DNA of 62,152 bases, filler included, from Klebsormidium nitens (Eukaryota; Plantae; Klebsormidiophyceae), in assembly GCA_000708835.1 (NCBI GenBank). It is 7 parts of 7 records of this genome, joined end to end, with 100 filler letters (N's around TTAATTAATTAA, not from the genome) between each part and the next. Parts side by side here need not be neighbours in the genome. Positions count along the whole stretch, not along the records: positions 30,017 to 34,101 come from DF238532.1; 6 more parts are not named here. One strand, 5' to 3'. The notes under the pieces were generated by a model. It was not told the DNA's origin and made no database searches. It was given only the letters and a program-made list of their open reading frames with translations. Below are positions 30,017-34,254 of this stretch, piece by piece. Numbering within the stretch: position 1 is the stretch's first letter; each line of letters starts with the position of its first letter. The position numbers and the translations under genes are program-made.

Positions 30017-30017
30017 A

Positions 30018-31289
30018 TCCGTGACCAACATCAACACGATCGAATGCACGAACTACATGAATCCTCCGGCTCCTCGAGTGGTGGTGAGCAAGATGATAGG
30101 CAAGCCGGGCGAAGCCCGCTCGTTCGACTGTGGGCCCGCGGGCCTCAGCGGAATGCTCCTGAAAGCGTCGGCCGTGGTGGATTCCATCCAACCCATCTGC
30201 GGCACGGACCTGGGCACGAAGGACGTCAACGCGTACATCAAAGGCTACCCCTGGTCCACCGGTGCTTCCATCGGCGGACCTAACGCGCCCCAGTTCGCTC
30301 AATGGTGTGCAGCCGGCAGTCGACCGGCCGGCGACAAGGCTCTCATAACATCCATCTCAGGAGGCCCGGCGAACAACGGCAACCACCCTAATGATCTCAG
30401 CAAGTTGTCGTTCACGTGCAAAGACTTTGCGGAAATCGATGCCGTGAAGAACGATCCAGAGCGGACGGCGGACGTCTGCATCGGGACGGATCCGCTGACG
30501 CCCGAACTGTCCGGCGCGATCGACTGCAATGGTTCGATGAAGGGTTACTGCACCGGTACTCGGGCCTGGTCCAACAAGTGCAACATCTACGTCGGCAAGG
30601 TTCCGACGCAAGCCGCCGATCAAGACAGAGCGAAGATGGACCACTGCTCGACGGGTCAGAACTACAAGAGTCAGGTCTGTCAAGACTTTTGCCTCGCCGG
30701 CGGAGTCGACATGTACGTCCCCGGCGGCCCGGGAAGGCCCGCCTTCAAAGATCAGTGTAACGTGCTCTATGCGAACAAGTGCAAGGGGGACTCTTCGGAC
30801 CTGTGCTCCTGCGTCAACAAACCCCGTCTAGAAGACTGGGGGGCGGACCAGACGTACCAAGCGGTGATGAGCGCCGTGAACGGAACGGCAGGAGCGAATC
30901 GCAATCCCCAGTGTTACTTCGGACCTTGCAAGGAAAGAGGCTACAAGGCCGTCAGCTTCTCGAAAGCTGGATGCCCGAGCTGCTTGAACAGCATCACCGT
31001 CTCAGGAACCGACGGAGGAGTCGCTAGCCTGGGCAGTGCCGTCCAGTCCTGCCTCGCCAGCGATGCGCCGGCACCAGCCGCCGCTCCCTCTCCCTCCAAG
31101 AGCGGCACGTCCTCCGGTTCCTCGGGGTCCCTTCAGACGCCAGCGCCCTCTCCACCCAAGGGGTGGCTGTATGCTTTGCTCATCCTCATCGCCGTCGTCC
31201 TCGTCGCAGCGCTGCTCGAGTGGGTCTTCACAGGCGACAAACCCACTCCGAGACCCGCAGCTTCCACCATGAACCATGCGCCGACCTAG
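30018..31289 (+). CDS. Intronless cysteine-rich membrane protein resembling the NCLDV entry-fusion family A16/G9/J5 (5'-partial)
   Basis: Frame is open from the contig edge. Cysteine pattern CQDFC..C...Y..KC.....LCSC...NPQCYFGPC.....CPSC..I, then a Pro/Ser linker and a single C-terminal TM helix (WLYALLILIAVVLVAALLEWVF). Family assigned from pattern recall, not a search. Confidence 0.6.
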   Translation, partial: SVTNINTIECTNYMNPPAPRVVVSKMIGKPGEARSFDCGPAGLSGMLLKASAVVDSIQPICGTDLGTKDVNAYIKGYPWSTGASIGGPNAPQFAQWCAAGSRPAGDKALITSISGGPANNGNHPNDLSKLSFTCKDFAEIDAVKNDPERTADVCIGTDPLTPELSGAIDCNGSMKGYCTGTRAWSNKCNIYVGKVPTQAADQDRAKMDHCSTGQNYKSQVCQDFCLAGGVDMYVPGGPGRPAFKDQCNVLYANKCKGDSSDLCSCVNKPRLEDWGADQTYQAVMSAVNGTAGANRNPQCYFGPCKERGYKAVSFSKAGCPSCLNSITVSGTDGGVASLGSAVQSCLASDAPAPAAAPSPSKSGTSSGSSGSLQTPAPSPPKGWLYALLILIAVVLVAALLEWVFTGDKPTPRPAASTMNHAPT

Positions 31290-31330
31290 CCGGTCTTCGG
31301 GAAAATAATCTGATCTTCTTTCCGAACGGT

Positions 31331-31522
31331 ATGTCGGAACCCTTACCGCGATCGAGCGATTCGGGCGACCAGACCTCGAATCACAACTCCGACGCTAGGG
31401 CTAAGAAACCGCCACCGAGTACTCATCCGCCAAAGAAGAACATGGATGCAGGCGTTCCGCCCCCGAAACCCATCGAACGTTCCAGCAGCTGGTTCCGTTA
31501 CCTCACCGGATCTTGGTTCTAA
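31331..31522 (+). CDS. Small ORF (63 aa), possibly a viral gene cut by the IS607 insertion
   Basis: MSEPLPRSS...SSSWFRYLTGSWF*. The frame can be continued into the right flank of the element (see findings). Confidence 0.3.
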   Translation: MSEPLPRSSDSGDQTSNHNSDARAKKPPPSTHPPKKNMDAGVPPPKPIERSSSWFRYLTGSWF

Positions 31523-31827
31523 AAGTTGTGGAACTACTCCCTATGCATTTAGAGTCTGCGTAAGTCTGCGTCCCAAAGAATGTTTGATGTCGAGAAGCAC
31601 CGATGGGTATTGACGTTTACGCCATTTGTCCAGACACGCTTATTCAGAAGAGCATGGAATCCAGGATGTTAGAAGAGCTTGGCTGGACGGAACCCAGAGG
31701 TCCTTGCTGCTGCCAGCTTTGCTTCTCGATCCTACTCAATCCTTCTCGAAACCTATCGAACTTCGGTCACGTCACACCTTATTAAGACCGAACAACATTG
31801 CTGAGGTCACCCTGCCATCGACGCGCC

Positions 31828-31835
31828 TATAAAAG
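31828..31835 (+). promoter_or_regulatory. TATA box upstream of tnpA
   Basis: TATAAAAG starts 58 nt before the ATG at 31886, followed by a pyrimidine-rich leader. Confidence 0.5.
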
Positions 31836-31885
31836 CCCGGATTACAAACATTCTCTCTCATTTCCAAAGATGCTCCCTCCACACA

Positions 31886-32836
31886 ATGTTCCTCGGCTTC
31901 AAGGCCGCCAAGGCCCACTTCGGGGTCTCCTCTTGCACACTCCGAAGGTGGGCCAATGAAGCCAAGGTCGTCTCCAAGCGCACCGCTGGCAACCACAGGG
32001 TCTTCCTCGCCGCCACCTCCCAAGCGGAAGAAGGCCGGGAACGCCTCGCCTACTGCCGTGTCAGCAGCTCCAAGCAGCGCGACGACCTGCAGCGCCAGAA
32101 GGACTTTCTCGCTCACCAATACCCCGGACACCGCATTGTCACGGACGTGGGCTCCGGCATCAACTTCAAGAGACCCGGACTGCTATCCCTTCTGGAACGA
32201 GTCTTGCAAGGCCGAGTATCGCAAGTGGTGGTTACCAGCAAAGACCGCCTGTGCCGCTTCGCGTTCGAGCTCCTTCAATGGATCTGCCTCCGCCAAGGGA
32301 CACAGATCCTGGTTCTCGATTCAGGAGACAAGTCACCAAACGAGGAGTGCACAGAGGACATCCTGGCCATCATGCAAGTATTCGCTGGTAGATGGAACGG
32401 CAAGAGGCGCTACAAGCAGGGAGGCGCGCGCAAGCGGGGCTCCCCCGACGGCAGTTCAGGTGGCTCGGGCGTGCCCGACTGTGTGCAGGAAGATCCGGGC
32501 CTTCCCGACGGCGCAGCAGCGCAACATACTCCGGAGGCTGGTGGGCGGGTGCAGGAAGCTGTACAACGAGGCGGTCTCCATGATCCGGGATCGCAGGCTG
32601 CCGTTCGCGAGCGAGGCGGAGTTCCGGGAGGCCGAGCGAGAGCGAGGGCTCCGGCTCGCCGAGCGGAAGCGCAAGGCCAGAAGCGGCCAAGAGGAGGAGA
32701 GCGGGCGAGGGGAGGGGGCGGGAGCGTACAAGGGCACGAAGCACCCGTGGCTCGACAAGGTGTACGTGAAGAACTTTCTGGTCCCGGAGAAGAGTGCATT
32801 CGTGCGGGCGAACCCGTACCTGAAGGACGTGCCTAA
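31886..32836 (+). CDS. tnpA: IS607 TnpA serine recombinase (N-terminal MerR-like HTH plus catalytic domain) with a long C-terminal run-on
   Basis: HFGVSSCTLRRWANE..RTAGNHR (HTH), AYCRVSSSKQRDDLQRQ (catalytic Ser), DVGSGINFKRPGL, KDRLCRFAFEL, EDILAIMQVF..GKRRYK. Confidence 0.92.
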   Translation: MFLGFKAAKAHFGVSSCTLRRWANEAKVVSKRTAGNHRVFLAATSQAEEGRERLAYCRVSSSKQRDDLQRQKDFLAHQYPGHRIVTDVGSGINFKRPGLLSLLERVLQGRVSQVVVTSKDRLCRFAFELLQWICLRQGTQILVLDSGDKSPNEECTEDILAIMQVFAGRWNGKRRYKQGGARKRGSPDGSSGGSGVPDCVQEDPGLPDGAAAQHTPEAGGRVQEAVQRGGLHDPGSQAAVRERGGVPGGRARARAPARRAEAQGQKRPRGGERARGGGGSVQGHEAPVARQGVREELSGPGEECIRAGEPVPEGRA

Positions 32837-33929
32837 GGAGACGAGGCAGCAGGCGGTGGAAGACGCGATCGAGGCGTGCAAGGCGGCCCTGAGCAACGTG
32901 CGAGCGGGCAACATCGAGCACTTCAGCCTGGGGTTCCGGAAGAAGAAGGACCCGCGGTGGTCGCTGGCAGTGGCGTTCAATGCGGTTTCAGGCAGCAGGT
33001 TCTGGCCGCGCAAGATCAAGGAGTTCGGGCAGCTGCGGGTGGCGGAGCCAGGGCACCTGAGGCCCCACTACGACAGGGAGCTGAAGGTCTCCAAAGACGA
33101 GCTGGGCCGCTACTGGATGCTGGTCCTGAGTGCGAAGGGCCCCGCCAGGGGCACGAACGAGGCTGCGGCCAGGGTGGAGGCGCTGGCAGAGTCGACCCGC
33201 GAGAACCAAGCGGGGGACCGGCCCGTAGCTGCCATCGACCCCGGCGTGCGGACTCGGCACTCGATCTACATGACGGACGGCAGGGTGGTGGACGTAGGCG
33301 GGGGAGACATCGCCCGTGTGGTGCGGCTCTGCCGCCACGTAGACCGCTGCATCTCCGCGCTGAAGAAGGGAGAATTCTGTGTGTCACGGAAGCACGTGAG
33401 GCGTGAGCCTGGTGCGTCTACTATGCGGCTGTTCGACCACTACCGCCCGGCCAAGAAGGAGCAGGGGGCGCATGTCGTCCCGCTAGACGGGCGTAGCAGG
33501 GAGCACATTCGGGCGAAGATGCACCGGCTGAGGGCAAAGGTACAGGCGCTGAAGGACGAGGTAGACAATCAGACGGTTGCATACCTGGTAAGGGAGTGCA
33601 AGGCGGTGCTCCTCCCGCCGTTCGACACGCATCGCATGGCGACGCGGCTGAATCACAAGACGGCACGGGCGATGATGCAGTGGAGGCACGGGGCATTCAA
33701 AGCCAAGCTGTTGGAGCGGGCAGCACGGATGGGCGTGCAGGTGATGGTCGTTCCGGAGGCGTACACGAGCAAGACATGTGGGGCGTGTGGGTGGCTGCAC
33801 CCAAGCTTGGGAGGGGCGAAGACGTTCCAGTGCAGGAGCTGTGGAGTGGAGTTAGACCGGGACCACAACGGTGCCCGTAATATCTTCCTGAGAGCAATTC
33901 GGTCTTGGGGAGTAGATAGCCCCGAATGA
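31956..33929 (+). CDS. tnpB: Fanzor2/TnpB RNA-guided nuclease; recognisable core starts ~32485, true start uncertain
   Basis: KIRAFPT..Q...L......R.LYN N-terminus, RuvC-I AIDPG, Pro at the canonical Glu position (VLLPPF), alternative Glu in VPEAYTSKTC, zinc finger CGAC...CRSC, RuvC-III DRDHNGARNI. No stops or frameshifts. Confidence 0.93.
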   Translation: MKPRSSPSAPLATTGSSSPPPPKRKKAGNASPTAVSAAPSSATTCSARRTFSLTNTPDTALSRTWAPASTSRDPDCYPFWNESCKAEYRKWWLPAKTACAASRSSSFNGSASAKGHRSWFSIQETSHQTRSAQRTSWPSCKYSLVDGTARGATSREARASGAPPTAVQVARACPTVCRKIRAFPTAQQRNILRRLVGGCRKLYNEAVSMIRDRRLPFASEAEFREAERERGLRLAERKRKARSGQEEESGRGEGAGAYKGTKHPWLDKVYVKNFLVPEKSAFVRANPYLKDVPKETRQQAVEDAIEACKAALSNVRAGNIEHFSLGFRKKKDPRWSLAVAFNAVSGSRFWPRKIKEFGQLRVAEPGHLRPHYDRELKVSKDELGRYWMLVLSAKGPARGTNEAAARVEALAESTRENQAGDRPVAAIDPGVRTRHSIYMTDGRVVDVGGGDIARVVRLCRHVDRCISALKKGEFCVSRKHVRREPGASTMRLFDHYRPAKKEQGAHVVPLDGRSREHIRAKMHRLRAKVQALKDEVDNQTVAYLVRECKAVLLPPFDTHRMATRLNHKTARAMMQWRHGAFKAKLLERAARMGVQVMVVPEAYTSKTCGACGWLHPSLGGAKTFQCRSCGVELDRDHNGARNIFLRAIRSWGVDSPE

Positions 33930-34084
33930 ACCTGGCGCTGCCGGGGACGAGTCGGAGAGATGGCTCCTAGTCCCAGAAGTATGAGGGGCTTGGTACTAGG
34001 CTAGAGGTAGGAGATAGCACGGTACACAGAAACTGAGTAGGATTACTTAAGTTTCAACCATCGGATCTGTGGCAGACGGAAGTG
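33930..34084 (+). ncRNA. Predicted omegaRNA (scaffold to 34064, guide ~34065-34084)
   Basis: 11-bp bulged hairpin 34029-34055; stems cctagt/actagg (33966-33971 with 33995-34000) and gggac/gtccc (33944-33948 with 33970-33974); gatgg 33959-33963 complementary to ccatc 34058-34062 just before GG. The 5' end may lie inside tnpB. Confidence 0.6.
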
Positions 34085-34254
34085 TAGTCTGTCCATATCA
34101 TNNNNNNNNNNNNNNNNNNNNNNNNNNNNNNNNNNNNNNNNNNNNTTAATTAATTAANNNNNNNNNNNNNNNNNNNNNNNNNNNNNNNNNNNNNNNNNNN
34201 NTGATCCCATTGTATATTATATGCGACTTTTCAGAAGAAAAATATAACAGATTA

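Follow-up and report, generated by a model that had tools for sequence, protein, structure and literature searches.

How can a transposon make two proteins from reading frames that run through one another for 881 nucleotides (nt)? The question is raised by a locus in the genome assembly of Klebsormidium nitens (GCA_000708835.1). The locus lies at positions 30017–34101 of the window, by which we mean the whole 62,152-nt stretch of DNA that was analysed and whose positions are used throughout. This piece comes from record DF238532.1 and holds an IS607-type element with two genes, one for the transposase TnpA and one for a Fanzor protein, the latter encoded by the second open reading frame (ORF2). 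The first-pass annotation had reported the overlap, and the ORF coordinates (31886–32836 for tnpA and 31956–33929 for Fanzor) bear it out, the common stretch being 31956–32836. Three ways had been offered in which a eukaryotic ribosome might make both proteins: leaky scanning to an ATG at 31956, an 82-nt intron, or a +1 frameshift. From the comparison of this element with its relatives, we consider it quite likely that the Fanzor N-terminus (~178 residues) is overprinted on tnpA in the +1 frame, as a case of selected dual coding that operates through the choice of start codon.

Both proteins are recognizable members of known families. TnpA shows the organization of an IS607-family serine transposase, a MerR-like helix-turn-helix (HTH) followed by a recombinase domain with an RVSS-type nucleophile motif. 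Pfam assigns residues 55–175 to Resolvase (5e-19), with a weak MerR match at residues 12–40, and the catalytic domains of ISC1904, ISC1926 and IS1535 in the PDB match with E values from 1e-28 to 4e-11. Alignment to PDB entries 3ilx, 3lhf and 6dgc covers residues 51–182, and homology to the solved IS607-type catalytic domains ends at about residue 182, near nt 32431. In ORF2, Pfam detects HTH_OrfB_IS605 at residues 179–213 and Cas12f1-like_TNB at residues 578–643. Fanzor2 and pro-Fanzor proteins are defined by a DPG motif in RuvC-I, an RD motif and a zinc finger of the CxxC...CxxC type, with the catalytic glutamate shifted to a position just ahead of this finger (10.1101/2023.08.09.552727). ORF2 carries the corresponding sequences AIDPGVRT (with D428 of the DPG at nt 33237–33239), VPEAYTSKTCGACG (with E601 as the shifted glutamate), CRSCG and DRDHNGARN (D636), and a CxxC...CxxC zinc finger lies in its core. 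In the family alignment (A3), D428, G430 and E601 never vary, and D636 is almost as constant (at least 90%). The TnpA catalytic motif, the Fanzor catalytic residues and the zinc finger are all intact in the window. The element is an intact IS607-type element of the pro-Fanzor/Fanzor2 lineage, and a new member of a known family.

The puzzle lies in where Fanzor begins. Only two Fanzor-frame ATGs come into consideration, at +70 and +694 from the tnpA ATG (31956 and 32580), and none lies between them, as the first-pass annotation had stated for the interval up to the Fanzor core at ~32485. The second ATG is already within the conserved core, and the canonical TnpB N-terminus, here KIRAFPT (ORF2 residues 179–185, nt ~32490), is upstream of it.

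Whether the open +1 frame extends to related copies was the point on which the first-pass reading hinged. Scans of viral contigs for close relatives of the window Fanzor and TnpA returned no match; a scan based on a TnpA alignment then succeeded, and such scans gave 79 viral and 80 bacterial loci. From these we assembled a survey set of 86 elements, made non-redundant at <90% identity, each of which combines an intact TnpA with a +1 ORF that measures 480 amino acids (aa) or more and starts no more than 135 nt from the tnpA ATG. Their carriers include GC-rich and AT-rich giant-virus contigs and metagenome-assembled genomes, Cyanobacteria, Dehalococcoidia and Poribacteria, among others. Over the TnpA core of the 86 elements, the +1 frame contains 0 stops against 943 in the +2 frame, and synonymous shuffling predicts a median of 2.8 stops in +1 (P<0.05 in 71/86). 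Thirteen related IS607 tnpA genes from outside the clade have 10–39 stops in the +1 frame.

The closer relatives are metagenomic copies. L001 is 97% identical to the window element, L002 is 74% identical at the nucleotide level, and L005 has 87% identity in TnpA; a second clade, L006–L008, has 50–57% TnpA identity and a GC content of 41–51%. Besides the window, an open +1 frame across tnpA together with an ATG at +70 or +4 was found in L001, L002, L006, L007 and L008. All intact copies have Fanzor in the +1 frame, stop-free across tnpA; the ATG lies at +70 in copies of the window clade and, as part of ATGTATG, at +4 in those of clade 2. In L003/L004 both genes are broken. Within-gene shuffling of synonymous codons gives the probability of finding no +1 stop as 0.038 for the window, 0.0014 for L002, 0.018 for L006, 0.042 for L007 and 0.0026 for L008; the +2 frame of the same tnpA genes contains 2–14 stops.

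These numbers bear on the possibility that the open frame is a by-product of high GC, with Fanzor either decaying or started at a non-AUG codon near 32460, for instance GTG 32460. The shuffling signal of the window alone is weak because its GC content is 61%, the far end of the TnpA frame shows that GC-rich frames do stay open by chance, and several close copies (L002, L003/L004 and L005) are broken. The comparative signal is nonetheless decisive, because the +1 frame stays open at 30–36% GC despite 25–33 stops in +2 (0 against 33 in L013, 0 against 28 in L010 and 0 against 25 in L014). Codon-level selection in the +1 frame, described below, and the intact catalytic residues and zinc finger of the window also speak against a GC by-product, which we regard as extremely unlikely. 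The earlier caveat that high GC favours chance open frames therefore fails for the overprinted core and stands only for the TnpA tail (32432–32836).

As to the condition of the copies, L002 has a TGG-to-TGA change in the Fanzor zinc-finger region (L002:7819–7821, ~window 33792–33794) that truncates the ORF at 606 aa. L005 and L003/L004 carry stops or frameshifts, and the window and L001 are intact. With L002, L005 and L003/L004 all interrupted, several clade-1 copies are decaying. In L006, L007 and L008, a gene caller returned the long Fanzor ORF (621–657 aa) and no tnpA, so public annotations of such elements conceal the transposase gene.

The +1 frame is not only open but also constrained at the codon level. 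Across all pairs of six copies, four-fold-site identity at conserved residues is 0.42–0.65 in the overlapped part of tnpA versus 0.25–0.44 in the Fanzor core, and both regions have the same divergence time. Three islands were identified in which TnpA varies in its residue but not in the last base of the codon, and in which the residue read in +1 is kept. They read PYW, LWLP and SWFS in the +1 frame and lie at TnpA codons 101–103, 114–117 and 141–144; in the window, PFW, WWLP and SWF occupy ORF2 residues 78–80, 91–94 and 118–120. At TnpA 141–144 the residues vary (I/L/V, V/L/M), and the codons are NTC (84/86), NTG (81/86), GTT (80/86) and CTC (64/86), which therefore spell S-W-F-S in +1. Family-wide, the +1 residues are conserved at 81% (P) and 87% (W) in the first island, 90% (L), 81% (L) and 85% (P) in the second, and 98% (S), 94% (W), 93% (F) and 80% (S) in the third. 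Control TnpAs show only A/T drift at the same codon positions. This fixed-codon pattern is hard to explain except by translation of the +1 frame. Both frames are open and under purifying selection across lineages, as dual coding demands.

Because only ATG 31956 can deliver the PFW, WWLP and SWF motifs, we take it to be the Fanzor start. It is kept in all clade-1 copies at +70, equivalent in position to the +67/+73 ATG of the bacterial relatives, and between 31886 and 31956 no ATG exists in any frame, which holds for every clade-1 copy. Upstream of both ATGs, the elements CCTATAAA and CTCATT are kept in the window, L001, L005, L002 and L004 amid otherwise diverged sequence, and the TATAAAA and initiator (Inr)-like elements are best read as a putative core promoter. 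Around the AUG of TnpA the bases are A at −3 and U at +4; that of Fanzor is preceded by C at −3, a weak context. Most virus-type copies have their two ATGs 4–13 nt apart, with the Fanzor ATG at +4, +7, +10 or −5, and in other viral copies the 4–13-nt AUG pair lies directly downstream of AT-rich TATA-like motifs, a spacing that fits leaky scanning.

In the model that we propose, TnpA would be made from AUG 31886 and Fanzor from the next AUG, at 31956, within the same 5′ region. On a capped eukaryotic or viral mRNA, Fanzor would be reached by leaky scanning past AUG 31886, in our view the simplest mechanism that the sequence allows. Translation would then proceed in the +1 frame across the serine-recombinase core for ~158 codons and through ~20 junction codons, to enter the TnpB fold from ~32490. 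The overprinted domain would form a disordered basic head (KRKK), followed by the PFW/WWLP helix and the SWFS strand, matching the RuvC-R subdomain of the mimivirus Fanzor2. In the bacterial ancestors, an internal start at +67/+73 would have served, with a Shine-Dalgarno-like stretch ahead of it in roughly every second copy. Of the three mechanisms put forward in the first-pass annotation, leaky scanning to ATG 31956 is thus the one retained, as the likely route rather than an observed one: the start and the overprinted N-terminus stand on the conserved motifs and the kept ATG, while the notion of the extension as a local eukaryotic feature does not hold, as described below.

The same dual-coding gene could instead express Fanzor from its own transcript, through an internal promoter at ~31886–31956 or just upstream. 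Giant-virus genes are usually individually promoted, and the Fanzor AUG has a poor scanning context; however, the conserved promoter-like elements are found only upstream of both ATGs, and the virus-type ATGs, mostly 4–13 nt apart or with Fanzor first, leave no room for a separate promoter. We judge this arrangement unlikely.

IS1 and IS3 transposases are made by frameshifting, and Fanzor occupies the +1 frame of TnpA in nearly every copy, so that a programmed +1 frameshift near the end of tnpA might yield a TnpA-Fanzor fusion with no independent Fanzor start. A frameshift is unnecessary: it would demand an open +1 frame just around the point of the shift, yet the frame is open and selected from near the 5′ end, with a conserved ATG. 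One database protein, P0027, does read TnpA 1–~110 and then the +1 frame, but it is a single sequence, and its change of frame falls midway through the catalytic domain. From the open frame and the conserved start, no search for a slippery site having been made, we consider such a frameshift highly unlikely. P0027 itself (577 aa, ENA, from a 2.7-Mb contig) contains MerR, Resolvase and TnpB domains, with TnpA 1–~110 followed by the +1 sequence LWLP...SWFST...KIRIYP. We examined it as a natural TnpA-TnpB fusion and set it aside, since a frame switch inside the catalytic domain suggests that the copy suffered a frameshift or was misassembled.

Nor did the proposed intron survive comparison. Splicing of 32378–32459 would join TnpA, or ATG 32372, to the Fanzor core, and a GT...AG interval of length 3n+1 is indeed present in the window, L001 (70 nt) and L005. 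The donor GT, however, belongs to the invariant TnpA Gln-Val codons (CAR GTN) found in every copy, while the acceptor AG is confined to these three closest copies and is missing at the homologous site in L002, L006, L007 and L008; nearby AGs in L002 give lengths divisible by 3. A conserved GT-AG pair with a frame-restoring length is thus not found among the copies. Splicing would also remove the C-terminal TnpA motif RWNGxRRY together with the conserved Fanzor N-terminal motifs, and the bacterial relatives, which have no spliceosome, share the layout. An intron here is scarcely probable.

We therefore return to dual coding by start-codon choice. Since 85 other non-redundant copies, from bacteria and giant viruses, share the arrangement, we attribute the overlap to selection for this design and reject a GC artefact, an intron and a frameshift as its source. 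Several points weigh against this view or temper it. The transcript start, the use of each start site and leaky scanning are all inferred, as is a eukaryotic translation system, which we deduce from the giant-virus-type neighbours of related copies (D5-type primase-helicase, mRNA triphosphatase, several DNA methylases, DUF5871 and DUF5901). Residence in a eukaryote or a eukaryotic virus separates Fanzor from bacterial TnpB; those neighbours mark the contigs of the related copies as giant-virus-type, and a host of this kind is presumed for the window element. Scanning might yield little Fanzor, given the weak context of its AUG. In principle, an RNA or DNA function could also underlie the synonymous constraint, although codons that spell conserved Trp motifs favour a protein. 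Finally, the N-terminal structural elements are predicted with moderate confidence (~77).

This last point concerns the AlphaFold2 (AF2) model of the window ORF, which was computed with an 86-sequence alignment and has a mean predicted local distance difference test (pLDDT) score of 75.5 and a predicted template modelling (pTM) score of 0.71. Residues 1–76 are predicted to be disordered, followed by a helix at 82–90 (PFW/WWLP), a strand at 122–125 after SWF and a second disordered stretch at 130–159. The helix and the strand have pLDDT values of ~77, and the core is confident from residue 177 onwards (pLDDT >90). The best Foldseek match of the model is 9b0l_P (E 2e-21), above TnpB and Cas12f structures. 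In a profile built from the 86 ORFs, the alignment of mimivirus L79 (ApmFz2, PDB 9b0l) starts with its residue 79 ('IETNSWYEHRKF') at the SWF motif, whereas the canonical TnpBs ISDra2 (8h1j) and ISFba1 (8iaz) enter only at KIRxYPT, position 184.

In ApmFz2, residues 1–53 form a disordered nuclear localization signal (NLS) and residues 109–130 a basic 'thumb' on the target DNA; between them lies the structured RuvC-R subdomain (residues 65–91), by which the RuvC fold is made complete and which also touches the omega-RNA (PMC11832414). The window protein resembles this mimivirus Fanzor2 (PMC11832414, PMC10530073) in its DPG RuvC-I motif, shifted glutamate and zinc finger, in an N-terminal domain that is absent from canonical TnpB, and in its IS607 TnpA partner. 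The SWY of ApmFz2 (residues 83–85, inside RuvC-R 65–91) aligns with the SWF of the window, and both proteins have a disordered, basic N-terminus, which acts as an NLS in ApmFz2. They differ in that the structural alignment has ~15% identity, the window protein has a longer REC insertion, and 178 residues precede KIRxYPT in the window compared with ~133 in the mimivirus protein. Together, these comparisons indicate that the overprinted stretch is a genuine Fanzor2-type N-terminal domain and not a local invention of a eukaryotic element. Direct searches gave less: tblastn with two short L79 fragments against the collected loci reached at most 47% identity, a degenerate DNA pattern for L79 had no match in the viral contigs, and a word-seeded protein search with the N-terminal 178 aa recovered only two proteins, a result of low sensitivity and not proof of absence.

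The first-pass annotation had also pointed to an NLS-like patch, PPPPKRKK, encoded over the TnpA linker. Where the window has KRKK (ORF2 residues 23–26), the 74%-identical L002 has KRRR, over a TnpA linker whose residues are not the same. Runs of at least four K/R residues occur in the N-termini of 7/31 virus-type versus 0/43 bacterial proteins, a comparison that is confounded by AT-rich composition, a concern that does not apply to the GC-rich window. By likeness to ApmFz2 (PMC10530073), KRKK may act as an NLS.

Bacterial relatives place the arrangement further back. In the bacterial copies, the +1 ORF opens at ~+61 and runs for 515–555 aa, with an ATG at +67 or +73 in 30/43 non-redundant elements. 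A Shine-Dalgarno-like stretch precedes this internal ATG in 21/43, supplied in some copies by AGG AGR, which encodes the arginines of LRRW in TnpA, and precedes the tnpA ATG in 3/43. Many of the bacterial loci L089–L168 have, in the ~20 nt upstream of tnpA, a TATAAT/TACAAT-like box that lies only 6–10 nt before the ATG; with no Shine-Dalgarno sequence there, this suggests a tnpA mRNA that is leaderless. The PYW/LWLP/SWFS motifs also occur in P0018, a Geitlerinema TnpB of 548 aa annotated at NCBI. Judged from these sequences, the nested arrangement is ancestral and arose in bacteria, and the window clade is a virus-borne lineage in which the start has stayed where the bacterial copies have it.

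Not all of the 881-nt overlap has the same standing, and it consists of two parts. The first (31956–~32431) lies over the TnpA core and is under selection, whereas the remainder looks incidental. The TnpA ORF ranges from 171 to 316 aa among the 86 elements, and that of the window is the longest. The tail is conserved less than the underlying Fanzor frame, and in L002 and L005 it ends elsewhere. Selection probably does not act on it for its own sake; it looks as though a GC-rich lineage lost the ancestral stop codon under the influence of its base composition.

Table 1. Features of the IS607-type element and their positions in the window.
Feature	Position	Strand	Description
Whole IS607-type element	31699–34064	+	~2.37 kb; ends set by comparison with copy L001
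Putative core promoter	31828–31864	+	TATAAAA 31828–31834 and Inr-like TCATTTC (A at 31860), 32 nt apart
Upstream ORF	31870–31959	+	29 codons, third frame; TGA 31957–31959 overlaps the Fanzor ATG (AATGA)
tnpA ORF	31886–32836	+	316 aa, ATG start
tnpA core	31886–32431	+	MerR-like HTH and serine-recombinase catalytic domain; catalytic motif YCRVSSSKQ
Fanzor ORF (ORF2)	31956–33929	+	657 aa, ATG start, +1 frame relative to TnpA, stop TGA 33927–33929
Fanzor N-terminal domain	31956–32489	+	ORF2 aa 1–178, probably overprinted on tnpA in the +1 frame
PPPPKRKK, NLS-like basic patch	32010–32033	+	ORF2 aa 19–26, over the TnpA HTH-catalytic linker
Conserved +1-frame motifs	32187–32318	+	PFW 32187–32195, WWLP 32226–32237, SWFS 32307–32318
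Putative 82-nt intron, judged not real	32378–32459	+	Donor formed by TnpA Q-V codons; acceptor not conserved
TnpA read-on tail over Fanzor core	32432–32836	+	~135 codons, Gly/Arg/Ala-rich
Fanzor2 core (WED/REC/RuvC/ZnF)	32490–33929	+	Pfam, AF2, Foldseek, conserved catalytic residues
Structured 3′ non-coding region to right end	33930–34064	+	135 nt; presumed omega-RNA scaffold

The upstream ORF listed in Table 1 was considered as a reinitiation device, given that its A-TGA stop overlaps the Fanzor ATG. Its ATG is present in the window, L001 and L005 (−16) and in L004 (−31, same frame), and it is treated as probably incidental because it is absent from L002.

IS607-family elements have neither terminal inverted repeats nor target duplications, and they end at GG dinucleotides, which copies in different contexts serve to define. 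The left end starts with GG at 31699–31700 and the right end finishes with GG at 34063–34064. L001 (97.4% identical, in another flanking context) aligns exactly over window 31698–34064, which places the ends at 31699 and 34064. An empty site for the element was not found; the L169/L170 contig carries the neighbour gene and diverges from window 31518 onward. This neighbour, an ORF at 30021–31289 upstream of the element, is cut by the edge of the piece and encodes a Cys-rich product with a Ser/Pro-rich stalk and a C-terminal hydrophobic segment. The product has no Pfam domain, and homologues (38–92%) were found only in JGI metagenomes 3300060284/5.

Downstream of Fanzor, the stretch 33930–34064 shows 74–97% identity in L001, L005, L002 and L004. 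Folding of the alignment gives a consensus structure of 42 pairs, among which 5 show compensatory changes, and is more informative than the single-sequence fold, which is unexceptional (z = −1.3). Rfam reports no family anywhere in the piece 30017–34101. We presume that this region is the omega-RNA scaffold, in which case the guide would begin at 34065. A solo omega-RNA-like/right-end segment, 78% identical to window 33927–34064, was observed at L002:3740–3878, ~2.1 kb upstream of the L002 element. No Fanzor match adjoins it; it may be what is left of an element, or else a guide locus that works alone.

Set beside known systems, the element shares with the bacterial pro-Fanzor IS607 elements (10.1101/2023.08.09.552727; Geitlerinema P0018) the TnpA and TnpB lineages, a TnpB in the +1 frame, PYW/LWLP/SWFS motifs and a start at +70 compared with +67/+73. 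They differ in their bacterial hosts, in the lack of N-terminal K/R runs (0/43) and in a TnpA stop at ~190–200 aa, compared with 316 in the window. Canonical IS200/IS605 and IS607 TnpBs (8h1j, 8iaz) share the WED/REC/RuvC/ZnF core and a right-end omega-RNA, but they begin at the KIRxYPT equivalent without the N-terminal domain and therefore have no long tnpA overlap. Among overprinted viral genes expressed by leaky scanning, tombusvirus p22/p19 (PMC11044054; review PMC8227390) likewise combines an alternative frame of an older gene, close 5′ starts and purifying selection on both frames. The window element differs from p22/p19 in being a DNA transposon and not part of an RNA virus, in an arrangement that arose in bacteria, and in a new frame that encodes no separate protein but the N-terminal domain of a pre-existing downstream gene.

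The OrfA-OrfB genes of IS1 and IS3 use programmed −1 frameshifting across a short overlap to make a fusion product. Like them, the window element has two overlapping transposon ORFs on one mRNA; unlike them, it has an overlap of ~500 nt, the +1 frame and a start for each ORF.

TnpA and the mimivirus Fanzor2 have been drawn as separate ORFs, with no mention of a coding overlap (PMC11832414, PMC10530073). The Fanzor and IS607 literature that we covered (PMC3627910, PMC10432273, PMC10530073, 10.1101/2023.08.09.552727, PMC11832414 and the IStron study; ISfinder and subscription-only papers lay outside this scope) does not mention an overlap of tnpA with Fanzor2 or TnpB coding sequence. The nested dual-coding gene model, and the origin that it implies for the Fanzor2 N-terminal domain, thus appear to be undescribed.

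Fanzor2 and TnpB are intensely studied as compact genome editors and as ancestors of Cas12, and the gene model proposed here redefines their context, with two genes nested instead of in tandem and with tnpA often dropped by gene callers. It predicts that the dosage of TnpA and Fanzor is set by start-codon choice on one mRNA. It also carries a warning, as constructs made from annotated internal ATGs may miss native N-terminal residues. With both frames selected from Cyanobacteria to giant viruses, an overlap of ~500 nt would be a long and old case of dual coding. Why one small IS607 clade crossed into eukaryotic viruses has been posed explicitly as a question (10.1101/2023.08.09.552727, Discussion). 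A tentative answer, which we hold to be possible though not probable, is that the Fanzor2 N-terminal domain was born by overprinting of tnpA in a bacterial IS607 lineage, and that paired starts within ~70 nt of the mRNA 5′ end pre-adapted this clade to cap-dependent monocistronic translation. If true, annotated Fanzor2 proteins, possibly including the 520-aa ApmFz2 of structural and editing work, may be N-terminally truncated relative to the native product, and the pre-adaptation would help to explain why pro-Fanzors, and not the far commoner other TnpBs, colonised giant viruses and eukaryotes.

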